This document shows positions 5,176-42,365 of a stretch of DNA of 43,121 nucleotides, piece after piece; within the stretch, counting starts at the first letter, position 1, and every line of letters starts with the position of its first letter. The notes beneath the pieces are model-generated. The model searched no databases. It saw nothing but the letters and a program-made list of their open reading frames with translations, and had not been told where the DNA came from. The stretch is from Hyphochytrium catenoides (lineage: Eukaryota > Protista > Hyphochytriomycota): assembly GCA_900088475.1 (NCBI GenBank), contig FLMG01003322.1, positions 1 to 43,121 on the forward strand, in the 5' to 3' direction. The translations under genes and the position numbers were made by a program.

Positions 5176-5255
5176 GGATATTTGGTGCAATGTCTTCGTG
5201 ATAGCACGCTTGGTTGATCAGTCATGAGATCCAGGTTCAAGTCCTGGAATATCCT
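5176..5255 (+). tRNA. Atypical tRNA-like gene (tRNA-Gln-like scaffold; no assignable canonical anticodon)
   Basis: GGATATT-TG-GTGC-[AATGTCTTCGTGATA]-GCAC-G-CTTGG-[TTGATCAG]-TCATG-AGAT-CCAGG-TTCAAGT-CCTGG-AATATCC-T. Perfect acceptor (7 bp), D (4 bp) and T (5 bp) stems, B-box GGTTCAAGTCC, and a T4 tract at 5260-5263. Confidence 0.7.
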
Positions 5256-5951
5256 TTACTTTTCCACTGAACTCTAAGAGCGATTTCCTTTCAGGATGAC
5301 CAGAACTGGGCGCTGTAGTTCCTTTACAATTACTTAGCTCACAGACGCTGCTGAAGGTAAGCACGCCGGTGAACACCAAGTGCGTGGCGGACCCGGTGGC
5401 TGGTCCGCTGGAGGTGAAGAGTCGGCGAGAGCTCGCTCTGCAGAGTCTACACTAGCGTCTTCAATCTCTTGAATTGACTGAGATCTATAAATAAAGCATC
5501 GCTGATGATCCGCTGTAATCTTCGTAATTCCTGCTCCTCGATCTTCGCTTATTAGAGTACTGAAAGATTCTTTCCCCTACGTGTTGTCAAGAGAAGCGAC
5601 TCTTCTACTTTATTATTAGTGGGCACTTCTTCTCTTTCTCTCTTATGTTCTTTCTTCTCTCTCCTCGCTGTCTCTTATTCCTTTCCTCTCGCTTACTTTT
5701 GTTATTCTCCCCTTTTGTTTTGGCATGCTACGACGTGTAGCTTATCTTCCAGGCTCGGTCATTCTTTGGCTAACCCTTGGTAGCTTGCTCTGTGCAGAAG
5801 ATAAATCTTCTATCAACAACTGTCATGTGATGTCGTTGTTCCGTCGCGCTCTCGCACTTGTTCCCCTTTCATGATATCCTTGCCTCCTGCTGTTTGGCTC
5901 TCCCTCTCGTTTTCTCCTGTTTCAATGTCTCCATAACTCCCTCTCTTCCTG

Positions 5952-31991: not shown

Positions 31992-34900
31992 TTACCGTTT
32001 CTCCACTTGTTTCCGTCGTGGGGCCTTTCTATGATTGGCGGTGTTAGAGTGTGCATCGTCAGAATGTCTCTGATCTCTTCTCTTAGTCTTTATGCCCGTT
32101 GTTTTTCTGTGTACCTCCACAGCTTCAGTTCTAGGCACGGAAATTGTAGCCTCTCCTTGCTCAGCTGCAATTGTGGAGGAGGGCTTACCTCTGGGCGATC
32201 CTTCACTGAGTTGGCCACCTTCATCTCCTCTGTCCCTGTTTCTAGCTTTATCTGTTGTTTCGCCCCTCTCCGGACCTTCTATCTCGACTTTGGGCCGCTC
32301 AACCGCCGCTGTTTTCTCTAAGGAATCACCAAGCAGGGCAACGCCAACTTCAACTTTTTCACCTTCTTCTACCTTCGAGCCCACTATCAACTCTGTGGCT
32401 TGACCTTGTCGCTTCTGTATCTCTTTACGTTTTGCTCTGAGATCCGAGGGTTGGAGAGCAGAAGGTTTGTACTCACCAAGACTCGAGTCCTCTAACACCT
32501 TGAGAGACGAGGAAAAGCCTTCTAGCATTTTTTCTGCCTTTTCATTCCCCTGGTAACGCATCAGGATCATTTTTGTCTTCTTGTGTACGTCGTCAAGCAG
32601 TCTCCGGTAGTCGGCTAGCTCAGCACGTTTGATGACCAGAAGCTCCAGCAGATTTTGAGGCTTCAGCTGACTAAGTTCAAAGGGCTGTCTAATGCCGATA
32701 GAAAGCGCTCTAGCTCCAAGAGCTTTAATTCCTTGCTTTAGAACTCTCCATTTCCTCTTTCCAGGTGGCACAGAGGTGGTCACCTCTACATTGTCCACAC
32801 TCCGGGGATTAGTTGGGGAAGAAGATGAGTTTGCAGCCGGAGGGGAAGAAACCGGAGTAACGCAAGAGGCGGAAGAGGTAGGCGGTAGAAGACTAGCTCC
32901 GTCTTCGAAGATCCTCCGGTGAGAAGTTCCCTCCTGCATGGAATCTAGTGCTTCCGTCTTCAGAGTCTTTTCTTCCCCTGGAGAGACCAAAGAACTATTA
33001 GTCGGGGGCTTTCCGTCATCCAGCTGGGGGCTCTCTTCTTCGTGGCTCTGTTCGTCGGCACAGTGGACAGAAGAAGTCTCGTCCAATGTAATAGGATTTT
33101 CAGCTGACGAGGGGATATTTTGCAGTTCTTCATCTGCTCCACTATCTCTATTTTCCTCTTCAATTCGTAGCCGTCTTTGTGAGCCTCTGCCTTTGGCAAG
33201 CTGCAATGGCGTCGACGTCTTTCTGCTGGCACGCTTCACTCTCTTTGGTTGCACTCTGATCTCATTAATCTCAACAATCTTCTTGACAATGTCCGCATGC
33301 TCTTCCTTCTTCCTCTCAACCATCCTCTCCCATTCCTCTCTGTGTCTCTTCTTTTCCTCTTTGAACTGGACGAAGACGGGTATGATCGCTCTTTCAAAGA
33401 TTTTAACAGCTTGACGTACAAGAGCCACCTGCTTGTCCAGCTTCTTCTGCTCCGGGCCATGATTCTGGAGGAGAACCGTGACAATCTTGGAGCTCTCCCT
33501 CTCTACAATTTCCACGTCCTTACGCGAGAGCGCTTTCTCTAGCTGTGTTCCGATCCTGTTGAGTTGGCTAACAATCTCCCCAATGTGCTTGATCTGAGAG
33601 ACAGAGTTGGTTCCCATTCTATAGACTGTCTCCAACTGGTTTAGGTTTTGGGACGTGAGAGATGGAAAGGGAAGAGGCTCATAAGGAGGTATCTCTAACT
33701 CAGGAATAGGTAACGGAGGATCAGGAGGAAGGATGATCCACTCTGCCTCTTCTCTCCTTCTCTCTTCTTCTCGTGCTAGAAGCCATACCGTGGCAGGAGG
33801 AAGACTTTCCTTATCGACCCATTGAATCTCTAAGTCCACAGCCATCTTCTCTCCTCCCTCGCTGACCCCATCACCTTGTAGGGTATAAAGACCACGGACA
33901 ACCCTTCCGTGGTCAAAAGAGAGAAGAGGTAGCAGAATTTTTCCAAGTTCGGCGCTCTGGAGATAGTTGAAATTGTAGAGAGTGAGGGAGAGCTTCTCGT
34001 CCTTATTCTTCTCCCAGGTGCAGGGGAAACCAAAGACTTCATTCCATTCAGGCGAGGACGACTCTTTAGCCACTCTGGTCTTCCAGCTTTCATCTCCCAG
34101 TGTCATCTCTATGAAGGGGCGAAGCTTCTCCTCCTTGGTCCTGACGTTGTTCGCGGAGAAGAGGCGAACAAAGAGACAACTTAAACTTTGCAGTCTCTCC
34201 TTCTCCTCCTGCTCTGCCTGCTGCTGAGACTGAGCAGCCCTTTCTCCTGCCATCCCTGCCGCTCGAGAGCGAAGGAGAGAAACTCCTTTCTTTTTCTTCA
34301 TATCCTGATGTGCCTTTCTCCTAGCGATCCGTCGTCTATACGCCATCTGGATTGTGATCGTCGCTTGTATCTTCCCATAGTCTCCCACCATGACATAGGT
34401 GGGAGGAACAGAGAGAGACTTCTCTCCAGTCTCTTTGCTGATGAAGTGAAATTGAGATGCACTTTCATCATACACTTCGACCCATTTCAGGGGATCAAGG
34501 GAGTGTGCGGAGTCTGCTACTTTCTTGCACTGCTCCACTCGTGCCTTAAGTCCTGGCTTGAGTGACTGGAGAGACAAGAAAATAGACAAAGAGGAGAAAG
34601 GTCGTTAGGGCAAAACATCCGTGAGGAGTACTCAGCAGATTTCACAGGTCCGATATGACTGTGAACACAATCAGTTGAAAGAAGCGAAGTATAAGCTTCT
34701 GCAGGCAGACAAAGGGGCGCATGATTAAAAGATCGCTGCCCACCATGCCAGAACAGACAGATCCGACATCCCGACTATGGAAGCAGTACGAGCGAGAATA
34801 TCAGGAAGTTTGAAGATAGATGGCTGCTCACCTTCATCATATCCAGGGCCCTAGCGGCAGTAACAGCCTCTACATCAGCTGGGGACATCTCCTCATCCTC

Positions 34901-37900
34901 GAAGGACTGAAGCGAAGCCGCAGAGGAAGAGGAAGCAATGGCAGGTGGAGAATGTGCGATTTCATCTGACGCCAGATTGAAGAAGAAGAACTTAGTTTGG
35001 TCGGCAGGATCCTTAAAGCGGACCCAGGGAGAGCAGAAGAGCCCTTCCTCCACGTCCCTTTCAAAAGAGAAAGCTGGAGGAGAGTCCCATTGATACCGCA
35101 GCGCCATCACCTCTTTGTTTGGGATCTGCTGTTTGAAGCACTCTTTCAGCGTCTCTTCCAGTTCCCTCTCCGCTTCTTTCTCTTTCCCGCCCTCTCTCAG
35201 TGCAGTGGCCAGTAGAAGAGCTACCTCATAGGACCAGCCTATGAAGCGCTGGGCTGTGCGGGAGAGCGAGACTGCCAAAGTATAATATCTTTGCGCTAAG
35301 CACTTGCGAATCAATGCTGTCCAGGTGTAGGTGGAAGAGAGTGAAGCTGCGAGTCCTCCTCTTTCTTTCTGAAACAATGTCAGAAGATCTTTGATCTGTC
35401 GATGCCGCATTTCCGTCTCTCCTCTCGTGCCAGGCATGTGCGGTGTCTCTCTCTCTTCTTGCACTAGCTCCAGTTCTATTTCTATAGTACTCTGTTTCAC
35501 GTCCCACTGCCAATTGTCATCAAGGTGCAAGGTTTGGACTCCTCTCCATTTCCTATTTCCATTGAAAGGGAGCTCGCTTGGTGAGAGTTGAAGGCGTCCT
35601 ATAACCTTAGCGTCTCTAGAGAACTCGTCTCTGATGTTGATAGTAAACTTCTCTCCAGCGCTAAGAGCTAGCTGATAGACTTTGCTCCCCTGTCCCCAGA
35701 AGGGATCCTTTGCCGACAGATGGCCACTGGAAGAAGAGAAAAGGCGAGGGCCAGATGCAGGGTAAGATGTAGTCATTGGTGACGAGAACGCCCGGAGAAA
35801 GGGTAAGGCCCTTTGACGCAGAGAGGATTGAATTGCACGAGACAGACCCAACGCTCCATTGCCCAGCGCTGCTGTGCGGAAGCTTTGTCCATGACAGAGC
35901 ACTTCCGCGTATGGAGCAACGTGAAGTCTGTGCAAAGGTACAGGAAGACGGGAGCACCGAATGATGCGAACGTTGAGCCTGTGCGGAGGGGGTTGAGAAG
36001 AAAGAGAATCCTCGTCCTCTCTTTGCTTCGCTTCCTTTTCCTTATTAAGAGCAGGGGGAAGAAGAGCCAAGTAAAAGAGCTCTCGCGCCTTTCGCCTGTA
36101 CTCCTGCACGCGACGTCTAATCACTCTTTCTTCAGCTTCGTCCCACTCCTTCAAGAAGGACTCTGATAGCGAGGGAATCTCCCTTTGCGCCGGTGTCTCT
36201 GTTGACGATGCGCCAGGTCTTGTGGGAGAGCGGGGAAGACTGGAAGACGGGACAGCCTCAGAACAGAGTCCGTTAGTCTCGGTTGGAGCTATCTTGTCTC
36301 CTTCCACAGCCGCTGCTGGTGAAAGAAGAACTGATTTACTTTGATCTACTGATTGCTCCTGTTTAGCGTTTACGATGGGGTCGTTCTGGGCTAGCTTCTC
36401 CTCTTCGGATCCGACCTTTCTCTCTCCATTGGCCATCTTCTCCTTCTTTTTAGAGATCTTCTTCTTCTTTGTTGTGGTAGACTCGACTCTAGCAACTTCT
36501 TCATCTGCTTGCTGTCTCCCTTCCCCGCCCGTCTTCTTCTTCTTCTTCTTTCCTTTCTTCTTTTTAGGTGATGATAAGGCAAGAGGCGGTGGAGGGCCTG
36601 CAGGAGGAAAAGGCTTAGGTGGCGGTCCTTTCGGTGGCAGAGTCCTAACTGGAGTAGGAGCGACGAGGGGCAATGGCTCTGATGAAGGCAGCAACGAAGT
36701 AGAGGCCAGAAGTTGGTCTGCTGATGAGTTGGAGGGAGGTCCTTCCTGCGGATTTGGACTGCTCTCTTCTTGACGTTGAGGCTCTGTCTTCAAAAGGGTC
36801 ATGACTTTGGCGGGCCCTTCTGTCACTATCCGCTCCGCGGTGTCGACCCCCGTTTTAGCTATCAATAGGGAAGGAGAAATGGCGGCCGTTGGGGATTCTT
36901 CCTTCCGTTCAGCTGATGGATTCGCTCTCTTAGTTTCTGGTTTTACACTAAGATCGGGCCCAGTGTTCTCTCCATGTCTCTCCGGAGTCGCAGAAGGTGC
37001 CGAGTTGGTGAGAAGAAGAGCGGCAGGGAGTTGTCTCTCCCTTTGTCGTGCCTCCTGCCTTTTACCTAAGGTATAGGTCAAATGCTCCGCCCAAGCGGAG
37101 TAAATCATCGCCAAAATCTGCAGAACATCTTCAGAAGAAAGCTGTTCTTCTCTCTCGCGCCTATCCTTCCTCTTGTCTGTCCTAATACTGCCCGTCTTTT
37201 CGTCGTCTATCACCTCCCTCAGCAGCTTCCTAGCATATCTAACACACTTGCCATAGTTGTCAAGCTCGAGAGAGTTCTGAATGATCAGAAAGAGAACCGC
37301 TTTTCTCCCTCCCTCTTCCCTCTTCGGCGGCTTCTTCCATCCAGGGAATTCTTTAAGAAGTCTGGCCCCTAACTTGTTGCTCATTACATATTTCTGCGAC
37401 GCATGGTAGCACAGAGCAAGGAGATAGACGGACGAGGGAGAGATCGAGCATGCAGGAAATTGCAGAGAGAGCTCAAGGGCCTCTATAGCGCCCTTAAGGT
37501 TGGCAGGGTCTCCCTCGTCTCTCCATTGATAGAAGTGACTCTTTCCTAAGAGTTGAAAGAAGCTTGAGTCTCCAAAATAGGAGCCTTTTCTCTTCACGAA
37601 CTCGAGGATAGCAGCCATTTTCTTCCAGTCTTTCTTTCTTTTGTCACGTTCTCCACTCTTCTGTCCTCCTTCTCTTGGCCATCTCCCATACTTATAAGCA
37701 CGCGTCAGGAGCCGGTGATAGAAGTGGTTTTTGCGAACTTCTTCATCGAACGGGCTCCCGGCAGAGGCCCAAAACTTCCTCTGAGCCGCAAGGACCGAGA
37801 GAGAAGAAGAGATATTGGGCGACTTCGGGGTAGGAGCTGAAGATGGATCTGATTGAGAAGAGGCCGCCTTTATCGCTTTTTGCAGCCACACAACGGCATC

Positions 37901-39673
37901 GACATTTCGGTTTGTCTCTCTATAACACAAAGCGATCTTCTCATAGTGACCCGCATTGGAACTAGAGAAGGAGAGAGAGGACGAGTGGCTGGCAGAAGAG
38001 AGAAGTGTCGCCTGCTGCAGAAAGTCCCGCGCAAGATAGAAATCATTGTGGGAGAAACATTTTAGTCCAAGCTTTTCCCATAGTACGGGGCTAAGAATCC
38101 ACTCTTGCCAAGAGAGAAAGTACTCTCCCGCTCCATCCCCACTGTCTTCCTTCTCCGCGCGTCTCTTCAGCACCGGGAGGGAGATGTCCAGTCCGAAGGA
38201 GAGAGGGAGACGGCGGAGAAGCTCTAACATGGACGTAGTCCTCAAGTGGGTCCTCTTATATTCATAAAAGCCCTGGGTCGTTCTCTTGAAGTCAACATCG
38301 GCAAAGGAGTCTTCCGTCTTTCTGACGCGTACTATTAGCTGAAGAGAAGCATCATCTACCCGGTTCTCCTCCTTGGAGAAGACAAGGAAAGAACCTACTG
38401 GCTTTCTCTGTAGGTGGGAAGAAGCATGGGAAACTCAATCAGCATGAGAGACATACACAGAGACCGTCGAGAGTTGTGGCTTGAGAAACCCATAAGAGAC
38501 AGACTCATACTTTTAGGGCGAGAATATCTCACGTCTCTCTTTCCATGCCTCTCTCCCTGTCCCTGTTGATTCCTCCTGGACCGCTTTCCTCTCTCTCTCT
38601 CTGTCTTACTATCTCTCTGTTGCTCTATCTTCTCTCGTTCTTTCTCACCTCGATCAAAGCCGCAGCTTGGTCTTCCGAGATCTCTCCAAAATAGGGTCTA
38701 TCAGGTGAGAGAGTCAGAAATGACGAGCAAGACACGTCCCAAAGAATTCTTTCCTCTACTCGTCTCTCTATTTACCCTGGCCCCACCTACACCGAACTCT
38801 CTCTCCGCGGCAATGTACGGTCCGCTCTCCCGAGGCACTACAGAGTGTATTTAACTTTTCCTGATCCGCCCTTTGCTCTCTCTCTCTCTCTCACTCTCTC
38901 TCTCAATCCTGGTCTCTCTTTCGTTCTCTAAAGGTTGGGATCATCATCAGGTTCCACTTCTTGGCCTTGTCATCCTAGGGCGACTCTATTCCCTCTGACA
39001 CCTCACCACCGTGCCTGCGACAGCAGCTTAATGACTGACTTACCCAGTATCTGTATGCAGTTCTCTCTCCAAGTAGAGTTGTTCGTAGATAAGGTTTGCT
39101 TCGTTCATCTTCTCCGTCTCTTCTCCCTTTCCCCACTTCTCAAAGGTGCTTGCAATCATCAGCCGGAAGTCATCTTCAGTGTAAGGAATGGTGGGAGACA
39201 CAGAGCCCGGAGCGATGGAGGATTGAGTCCGAGGAGAGGCGGGAGAAGACGAAGAAGAAGGATAGCAAGCTTCCATAATCTCCCTAAGACCAGCAATAGC
39301 CTCTTGATAACGAGAGAGCTCTCGGAGATAACAAGCACGACGGAAAAGGAGAGCGAGGCGCTCTGAAGTGGCTGCATAACGGTCTATGAACCTTTGGAAA
39401 ACAAAAAGAGGGGAGAGACAGGAAGAAGGAAGACGGTGAGGACGGAAGAGAGAGAGGTGAGAACGGAAGAAGAGAGAGAGAGAGAGATCGGGAGAACCAA
39501 CGGGGAACAAAGAGATCAAGAGCAGAGAGAGAAGGAAAGGAAGAGAGAGAGAGATGAAGAGGGAAAGAGCGGGAGAGGGAAAGAGAGACGGGGGCAGGGG
39601 AGAGGAGAGAGAGAGAGAGAAGAAAATTGAGAGAGAGAGAGAGAGAAAGAGAGAGAGACAGAGAGACAGAGAA

Positions 39674-39706
<33 letters not shown>

Positions 39707-41494
39707 AGAGAGAGAGAGAGAGAAAGAGAGAAAGAGAGAGAAAATATGGTCAAGAATGCCATCGGAAATAAAATATTGGGAGAAACTTCCTATGGCCTTT
39801 TGCCCACTCAGCTTCCTCTTACATCCTGGCCGTTCTTTTCCTGATGGTTGCGCTTACCTGGCAATCATCTTCACGTTCTCCTTCAGTTCGCCATTCTTCT
39901 CTAATAAATATATGCACTTTAGAAACGCATCCTCTCTGCAATTCTCCTCATACTCGAGGCTCTGTTTATAGGCAGAGCAAGCCAAACGTAGAACAGAAAG
40001 CTCTCCGCTAACTTCCCAGGTGCTGTAGAGAGAGAAAGCAAACTTTCCCCAGAGCTCGGGAGAGAACTTGGCTCCTGCCTGGAGAGCAAGAGAGAGGAGA
40101 ACTGCAGCGCGACGATAATCTCCCACTTCGTAGGCAAAGAGAGGAAGAGAGACGTCCTCTCTTCGTTTTTGCTCGTCTGTATAGAGTCTCTTTCTTCGTG
40201 CGATCTCTCGGCCTTTCATCCCTCGGTACACCCGTTGAAGGAGCCTCACTCGCCGGTCAAAAAACCGAACACTCTCTCTCTCTATGGCAAGGCTGGTAAT
40301 TCGAGAGACATAGCGCCGGCTTTCTCTCTCTCTTGCCAATCTCTCTCTCACTTCCCGAGCAATGTACGCACGGAACTGCAGCTGTATGGAGACGCAGGCC
40401 TTATTCCTCTTTCTCTTCCTGTACTCCTTCCTTGCCACATAACACCGAAAGCTCCTTTGAATGGTCTCCGCCGAGCGTTGCTGCCTACGGTTTCTCCCTA
40501 ACTCAAGCGCTCTGACCTTCCTATGGTACCGTCGGAAGAGAGACTGGATCTTCCTGGCACTCGTATCCCTCAAGGAGAGAAGGCTCTCCTTTGTAGAGTG
40601 TATCAGAGGGATAAGCACTCTGTCTATCACTCGAATCGAGAGAGAGTGACAGAACCGTCTCTCTATCCTTCTTTTGGTCCTCTCCCATCGATACCAGCGT
40701 TGAACCCTCTCTACTGCCCTTACTATCAGAAGAAGAGGAATCTCTTGAAGAAACTCTGTTGCCACTTTCTTTCGCCATCTCTCTCTTCGTCTCCTATAGA
40801 GCTTATACCGGATCTGGAGAGAAGAGATTGCCCGCTGTACATTCCTTATCGCTCTTTCCTGAAGAAGCAGAAGAAATTTCTTGCGACTCGCATACTTCCG
40901 CCACAAGCTTTGTATCCGAATAGCTGCTTGGACCTTCTGGTGCTCTCGTGCAAGAACACTATCTTCACTGTTGGTTCCTTTCTCTCTCTTGTTCTTCCAT
41001 CTGTCTTTACTCCTTCCCACCACATCGCCAGTGTAGAGTGAAGCTGTGTAAACAGAGGCGAGGCTAGAGAGAGAAAATTCTCCGTTGGGATAGAGTCTGT
41101 TCTTTCCTTCTCTTCCGATAGGCTTTCTTCCATCAGGAGAAGGGGATGAAAGGGCGGGAGAGAGTGAAGAAGAAGGGAGAGGTGGTCGTACAACCTGGCT
41201 CGGTCGGGATACAATGAGCTTCACATGCTCTACTTTCGAGGAAGAGAAAGAAGGAGAGACCGAGAGGGGAGAAGAATGAGAGGATGTAGGGACATCCTGC
41301 CTGACCTTCACCACGGGAGACTTCAAGGGAACCATAGCGGGAGATGGAGACTGCCTCTGTTCGCTATCTAGAGAAGGAAGAAGGATCAGAGGATTATCTC
41401 TATCTCCTTGGTTGGTAGAAAGAGAAAGAGGAGGATTAGAGCCGACCACAGGACGTTTGACTCTATTTTGACTCGAGTCGGTCGGTCTTAACAT
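31992..41494 (-). CDS. Giant multidomain scaffold, 2727 aa: IQ cluster-TPR-SH2-like-TPR-Pro/Lys linker-C2-TPR-WW-like x2-IQ-C2-coiled coil; exons 41494-39858, 39391-39044, 38697-38649, 38407-34832, 34565-31992
   Basis: All four introns are GT-AG and phase-consistent (phases 2,2,0,0); the exons sum to 8184 nt. IQ motifs (AAIRIQSLWRKY, SAETIQRSFRCY, ACVSIQLQFRAY, ATITIQMAYRRR), C2 (PFIEMTLGDESWKTRVAKESSSPEWNEVFGF), WW-like (WVRFKDPADQTKFFFFN; WVEVYDESASQFHFIS). Confidence 0.85.
39400..39740. repeat. (GA)n-rich microsatellite/polypurine tract inside intron 1 of the giant scaffold gene
   Basis: Directly visible; explains the LSLS and RERE artefact ORFs. Confidence 0.95.
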
Positions 41495-42266: not shown

Positions 42267-42365
42267 TTCTCTCTCTCTCTNNNNNNNNNNNNNNNNNNNN
42301 NNNNNNNNNNNNNNNNNNNNNNNNNNNCTGTCTCTCTCTCTCTCTCTTTCTTTCTCTCTCTCTCC
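42267..42365. repeat. (CT)n microsatellite containing an assembly gap (N 42281-42327)
   Basis: CT repeats flank the N run on both sides. Confidence 0.9.

Follow-up and report, generated by a model that had tools for sequence, protein, structure and literature searches.

A candidate SH2-like module, split by a 49-nt microexon and with both phosphate-binding arginines replaced, in a predicted IQ/TPR-like/C2 scaffold of Hyphochytrium catenoides

Introduction

Does a large gene of the protist Hyphochytrium catenoides carry an SH2-type domain whose first helix is hidden in a 49-nt exon, and could such a domain still read phosphotyrosine with both of its phosphate-binding arginines replaced? The question was raised by the first-pass annotation of a 43,121-nt stretch of DNA (contig FLMG01003322.1, positions 1 to 43,121; the whole of it is called the window below). 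There, an exon at 38697-38649 was spliced to an in-frame stretch starting at 38407, and the product was described as a pseudo-SH2 domain inserted between TPR helices. The kind of domain, an SH2 without the arginine of the FLVR motif, is already known, and the present module would be a strongly diverged variant of it in a new host architecture. In the working SH2 domains of human RIN2 and TYK2 (both His) and of SH2D5 (Trp) this arginine is replaced (PMC7530234); since these are members of the family without it, its loss alone does not exclude an SH2 fold. The locus was therefore considered at three levels: the exon structure that would bring the module together, the resemblance of the product to SH2 domains, and the residues found where the phosphate would be bound.

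Exon structure and domains of the host gene

The host gene runs from 41494 to 31992 on the minus strand and was modelled as five exons. Exon 1 (41494-39858) is followed by exon A (39391-39044), which lies upstream of the microexon, by the microexon itself (exon B; 38697-38649, 49 nt), by the large exon C (38407-34832, with open reading to 34775; 1210 codons) and by the last exon (34565-31995); the junctions were read directly. The exons add up to 8181 nt, which is divisible by 3 and gives 2727 codons, the length that had been stated before. All the introns of the gene are of the GT-AG type with GTRAG donors. Pfam recognised IQ motifs in three stretches of exon 1 (PF00612, E=4.8e-8), and the last exon matched the C2 model (PF00168, E=4.6e-13). 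This C2 domain had also been proposed in the first-pass annotation, together with WW-like segments and a first C2-like segment for which there was no Pfam match at E<=1; a search for WW domains in the host gene returned none at that threshold.

The exons on either side of the microexon are weakly TPR-like. Exon A, which is helical, matched TPR_6 (E=0.022; 15.8 bits against a cut-off of 26.3) and, again below the cut-off, TPR_2 (E=0.18). Downstream of the module, residues 109-180 of exon C (37868..38083, minus strand) matched TPR_2 (E=0.004; 17.6 bits against a cut-off of 27) and TPR_1 below its cut-off (E=0.33), and a low-confidence AlphaFold model of the first 240 residues of exon C has helices from residue 100 on. 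The proposed location between TPR helices thus finds matches on both sides, all of them below the Pfam cut-offs, and is weakly supported. The protein would be a large scaffold with IQ motifs, TPR-like helices and a C2 domain.

A candidate 49-nt exon with good splice signals and a tandem acceptor behind it

Exon A ends at 39044 in phase 2, with two bases (GG) of a Gly codon placed before the donor gtaagt. The intron that this donor opens (38698..39043, minus strand, 346 nt) has a branch-like CTGAC motif ~17 nt before its acceptor, ...cacctgatag. The microexon could be read directly, with the acceptor ...ctctcacctgatag in front and the donor gtgaga behind, and its translation in the phase of exon A is (G)PYFGEISEDQAAALIE. 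The next intron (38408..38648, minus strand, 241 nt) starts with that donor, contains a branch-like CTGAT motif and stops in all frames, and ends with the acceptor ...cttcttcccacctacag. Exon C then starts at 38407, after ccacctacag, and reads RKPVGSFLVFSKEEN... (in a longer quotation, RKPVGSFLVFSKEENRVDD...). Translation and splice phase agree across both junctions, and the peptide and the coordinates reported earlier, in which 38697-38649 is spliced to 38407, are correct.

To place the 49-nt segment among its competitors, every open AG..GT segment in the intron with a length of 3n+1 was taken as a candidate frame-restoring exon. Among the 61 candidates so obtained, the 49-nt segment was the best, being the sole one to combine a YAG acceptor, a 71% pyrimidine tract and a GTRAG donor. 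The acceptor of exon C is, moreover, a tandem one (CAGAG; 38406..38410, minus strand). Use of CAG starts exon C at 38407 and needs the microexon, the same acceptor leading to a frameshift into a stop when the microexon is left out. Use of GAG moves the start to 38405, and the direct join 39044/38405 is then in frame with the microexon skipped. Since the two AGs are 2 nt apart, the choice of acceptor would be coupled to the inclusion or skipping of the microexon; and since the direct join is also in frame, an open reading frame does not by itself require the microexon.

The mRNA might accordingly skip the 49-nt segment by way of the GAG acceptor, leaving in exon C a decayed betaB-betaG relic of an SH2 domain that is no longer formed. 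The direct join gives an uninterrupted product (...HTDTGKPVGSFLVF...), and exon C alone did not yield a confident AlphaFold fold (see below), both of which would suit a remnant of this kind. However, GAG is the least used acceptor at tandem NAGNAG sites, where the upstream CAG normally wins, a preference that may not hold in this organism. The pyrimidine tract, YAG acceptor, GTRAG donor and branch-like CTGAC of the microexon also speak against skipping, and the segment encodes exactly the SH2 block that exon C lacks, a coincidence that would go unexplained if it were never expressed. The loss of the domain by skipping is thus regarded as very unlikely, and the microexon, judged by its sequence, is probably present in the mRNA.

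Resemblance of the product to the SH2 signature

Together with ~78 codons at the start of exon C, the microexon would encode a single module of ~95 residues with a signature running from betaA to betaG. The microexon (38649..38697, minus strand) matches the N-terminal block of SH2 domains and provides the equivalents of betaA (YFG) and helix alphaA; the first 78 codons of exon C (38174..38407, minus strand) provide SH2-like betaB to betaG, with GSFLVF, LQLIVRV, GFYEY, SMLELLRRL and GLDISLPV. The module was extended to ~38174 because PLSFGLDISLPV, the sequence that succeeds the last helix, agrees with the tail of SH2 domains as well. The signature blocks (W/Y-F-G..I-S, GxFLV, G-x-Y and F/L..S..EL) are all present, and in order.

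The weight of this resemblance was measured in two ways, both of them with patterns that do not come from a curated profile. When a loose regular expression, modelled on the N-terminal block of SH2 domains and not demanding the arginine, was run over the six frames of the 43-kb window, it matched once, at the microexon; 2.4e-4 matches would be expected per window, and 100 shuffles produced 0. When the SH2 consensus written in the first-pass annotation was scanned over 86,238 six-frame positions, exon by exon and unjoined, the microexon block ranked first of all positions, by 14 to 12 over the next best. The four-block chain of exon C, at 38401, also ranked first (27 versus 24 for the next; null mean 10.8, sd 2.6); on this uncurated consensus, both margins are small. 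Between these two top positions there are 241 nt; they share a strand, and their order and splice phase are those that the domain requires. The unique regular-expression match and the top-ranked blocks bear out the end-to-end consensus match that had been claimed.

Language-model features gave a similar picture. For an 85-aa query from exon C that did not include the microexon, the three hits shown by the ESM Atlas were SH2 clusters and the ten best named matches were all in the SH2 family or clan, with a score of 0.78, which falls in the tool's 'lead only' range, below its trust range. When the search was repeated with PF00017 and PF14633 skipped, no usable match was obtained, so SH2 is the only family that these features indicate.

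All this might be a chance resemblance, the segment being a mixed alpha/beta linker, peculiar to the lineage, that connects helical repeats and is neither an SH2 homologue nor SH2-folded. Such an explanation can draw on the very large number of windows scanned, among which rare coincidences are to be expected somewhere, and on an ESM score short of the trust range. Against it stand the two exon-wise top ranks, which are independent of one another; chance is hard to invoke for them because they are adjacent, ordered and in splice phase. The low expectation for the N-terminal block, the indication by ESM of SH2 and no other family, and a match that covers every SH2 element, the GL...L.P tail included, also argue against coincidence. 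The profile, structure and homology searches described next bear on the same point.

Profile, structure and homology searches

Profile, sequence and structure tests were made exon by exon, and hence on part-domains. At E<=10, hmmscan matched no SH2-clan Pfam model to exon C, taken in pieces of 67, 95 and 1210 aa, or to the ORF of the microexon, taken as 20 and 36 aa; PF00017, the model by which the first-pass annotation had proposed to check the domain, was thus unmatched on the exon pieces, and so was PF14633 on the exon C pieces and the microexon ORF at the same threshold. Neither an EF-hand nor a Cbl model of Pfam matched the exon pieces. A phmmer search of all PDB chains, likewise made exon by exon, was empty at E<=10.

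AlphaFold, run without an alignment, gave a mean pLDDT of 56 for the first 95 residues of exon C, in which helix alphaA is absent, and of 38 for the first 240 residues. Both of these low-confidence models have a strand at residues 22-28, a strand at 48-53/55 and a helix at 57-66, an arrangement compatible with betaC, betaE/F and alphaB. When they were submitted to Foldseek and VIA-align, noise-level ferredoxin-like matches were returned and no SH2. The combination of AlphaFold and Foldseek, the second check that had been suggested, therefore ended, for exon C alone, in low pLDDT and no SH2 match. The module is not an established member of the SH2 family, since neither the profile searches nor the fold models of its pieces provided support: of the SH2 identity first claimed, the part concerning the signature has stood (consensus and ESM), and the part concerning the fold has gained no support from Pfam, the PDB or the AlphaFold models of the pieces.

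Relatives of the module were also sought. When residues 1-460 of exon C were used with phmmer to query 1.84 billion representative proteins, one match was obtained, to the TPR-repeat protein P0001 (E=4.3e-5), and it is confined to residues 126-185 of exon C; for the SH2-like module, this query found no relative among those representatives. Word searches were empty with exon C residues 1-460 (covering proteins of <=2118 aa), with residues 1-300 of the last exon (covering proteins of <=1514 aa) and with the 95-aa module. A scan of metagenome contigs gave 96 pattern matches and 0 confirmed loci. The exon pieces thus have no Pfam, PDB or structure-search support, and no homologue of the module appeared in the protein or metagenome searches, as would be expected of a linker that resembles SH2 by chance. 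When these results are set beside the adjacency and completeness of the signature, a chance resemblance is considered unlikely, yet it is the alternative to be taken most seriously. The module most likely takes an SH2-like fold.

Residues at the phosphate-binding positions

If the signature alignment is right, on which all the residue assignments of the module depend, both arginines of the phosphotyrosine pocket have been replaced. The position of the FLVR arginine, betaB5, holds a Phe (38380-38378, minus strand; motif SFLVF), and alphaA2 holds a Glu instead of an Arg (38675-38673, minus strand; motif GEISE). Both replacements had been noted before and are read directly from the sequence. According to the same alignment, the BC loop has the acidic sequence EENRVDD, and betaD4 shows no evident His. 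Since the alphaA2 and betaB5 arginines are replaced and a betaD4 His is not evident, the module is proposed to be blind to phosphotyrosine, and its canonical pocket most likely does not read this residue.

A phosphorylated (or acidic) residue might nevertheless be bound in a non-canonical pocket, through other basic side chains. Basic residues do occur near the expected pocket, namely the Lys after FLVF, the RVRK that ends betaC and the KR in betaD, and there are precedents: the C-terminal SH2 of p120RasGAP recognises phosphorylated residues non-canonically by means of betaD4, betaD6 and the BC loop, and that of Spt6 has a back-side pocket for pSer (PMC7530234). On the other hand, the loss of both arginines, the acidic BC loop and the Glu at alphaA2 would make the site unfriendly to phosphate. 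A working phospho-reader is, on balance, held to be very unlikely.

Comparison with known SH2 domains

Compared with canonical SH2 domains (PF00017, e.g. that of Src), the module is alike in the order and spacing of its blocks ([W/P]YFG-x-IS, A..LI, PxGSFLV, a hydrophobic betaC and GFY), in an alphaB helix ending in ..ELL, in the GL...L.P tail and in its length of ~95 residues. It differs in having Pro for the first Trp, Glu at alphaA2, Phe at betaB5 and no evident His at betaD4, and in that its pieces have no Pfam match.

The replacement of the betaB5 arginine is shared with TYK2, RIN2 and SH2D5 (PMC7530234). These are, however, animal proteins that profiles recognise, whereas in the module betaB5 is a Phe, the alphaA2 Arg has been lost too, and the host is a protist IQ/TPR/C2 scaffold. 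A functional parallel is proposed with the JAK family, the SH2 domains of which are phosphorylation-independent receptor-binding modules that act in interactions inside a larger assembly (PMC7530234). The C-terminal SH2 of Spt6, found in all eukaryotes, likewise has an SH2 fold without the canonical phospho-binding pocket (PMC7530234), which is comparable with the replaced phosphate-binding arginines of the module. Spt6 differs in being a transcription elongation factor whose SH2 domains form a C-terminal tandem, and the rest of the host gene bears no likeness to Spt6.

Preferred reading and its significance

The reading preferred here, with moderate confidence, is that the locus encodes, in a microexon and the exon after it, a diverged SH2-like module that is blind to phosphotyrosine in its canonical pocket and has an interaction or packing role in an IQ/TPR-like/C2 scaffold. 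Like the SH2 domains of JAK/TYK2 and SH2D5, to which it is compared by analogy, the module may serve as a phosphorylation-independent peptide-binding or packing unit inside the scaffold. At present this claim has signature-level and language-model evidence only.

A more far-reaching idea, to which rather little probability is assigned, is that the module founds a branch of SH2-derived domains, restricted to protists, in which phosphate reading was given up altogether, and that it docks hydrophobic or acidic peptides in a giant scaffold linked to calcium/calmodulin and to membranes by its IQ motifs and C2 domain; in that case a 'pseudo-SH2' would have arisen independently outside animals.

Should the fold be confirmed, the locus would be a case, from neither an animal nor an amoebozoan, of an SH2-type domain in which both phosphate-binding arginines have been lost, and a non-animal example of the reuse of SH2 as a phosphorylation-independent interaction module. 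The combination of IQ motifs, TPR-like helices and a C2 domain has, to our knowledge, not been described for SH2 proteins. A confirmed fold would also mean that a 49-nt microexon can hide the first helix of a domain from ORF-based annotation.

Other features of the locus

Some further features of the window were recorded. A run of N at 42286-42336, with GA/TC dinucleotide repeats on either side, marks an assembly gap ~800 nt upstream of the start codon, so the promoter region of the host gene is incomplete. ARAGORN found no tRNA genes in the whole window (1-43121), a result that bears on the non-canonical tRNA-Gln-like RNA claimed at 5176-5263. The middle of exon C (34832-36900) is a long low-complexity region, Pro-rich (PPKGPPPKPFPP) and with Lys runs after. 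The intron that follows exon 1 contains a long imperfect (AG)n/(CT)n array at 39519-39741 (TRF period 2, 112 copies, 72% matches), followed by a 21-22 nt repeat at 39407-39485; together they give rise to a spurious SLSLSL 'ORF' in the mechanical ORF list.
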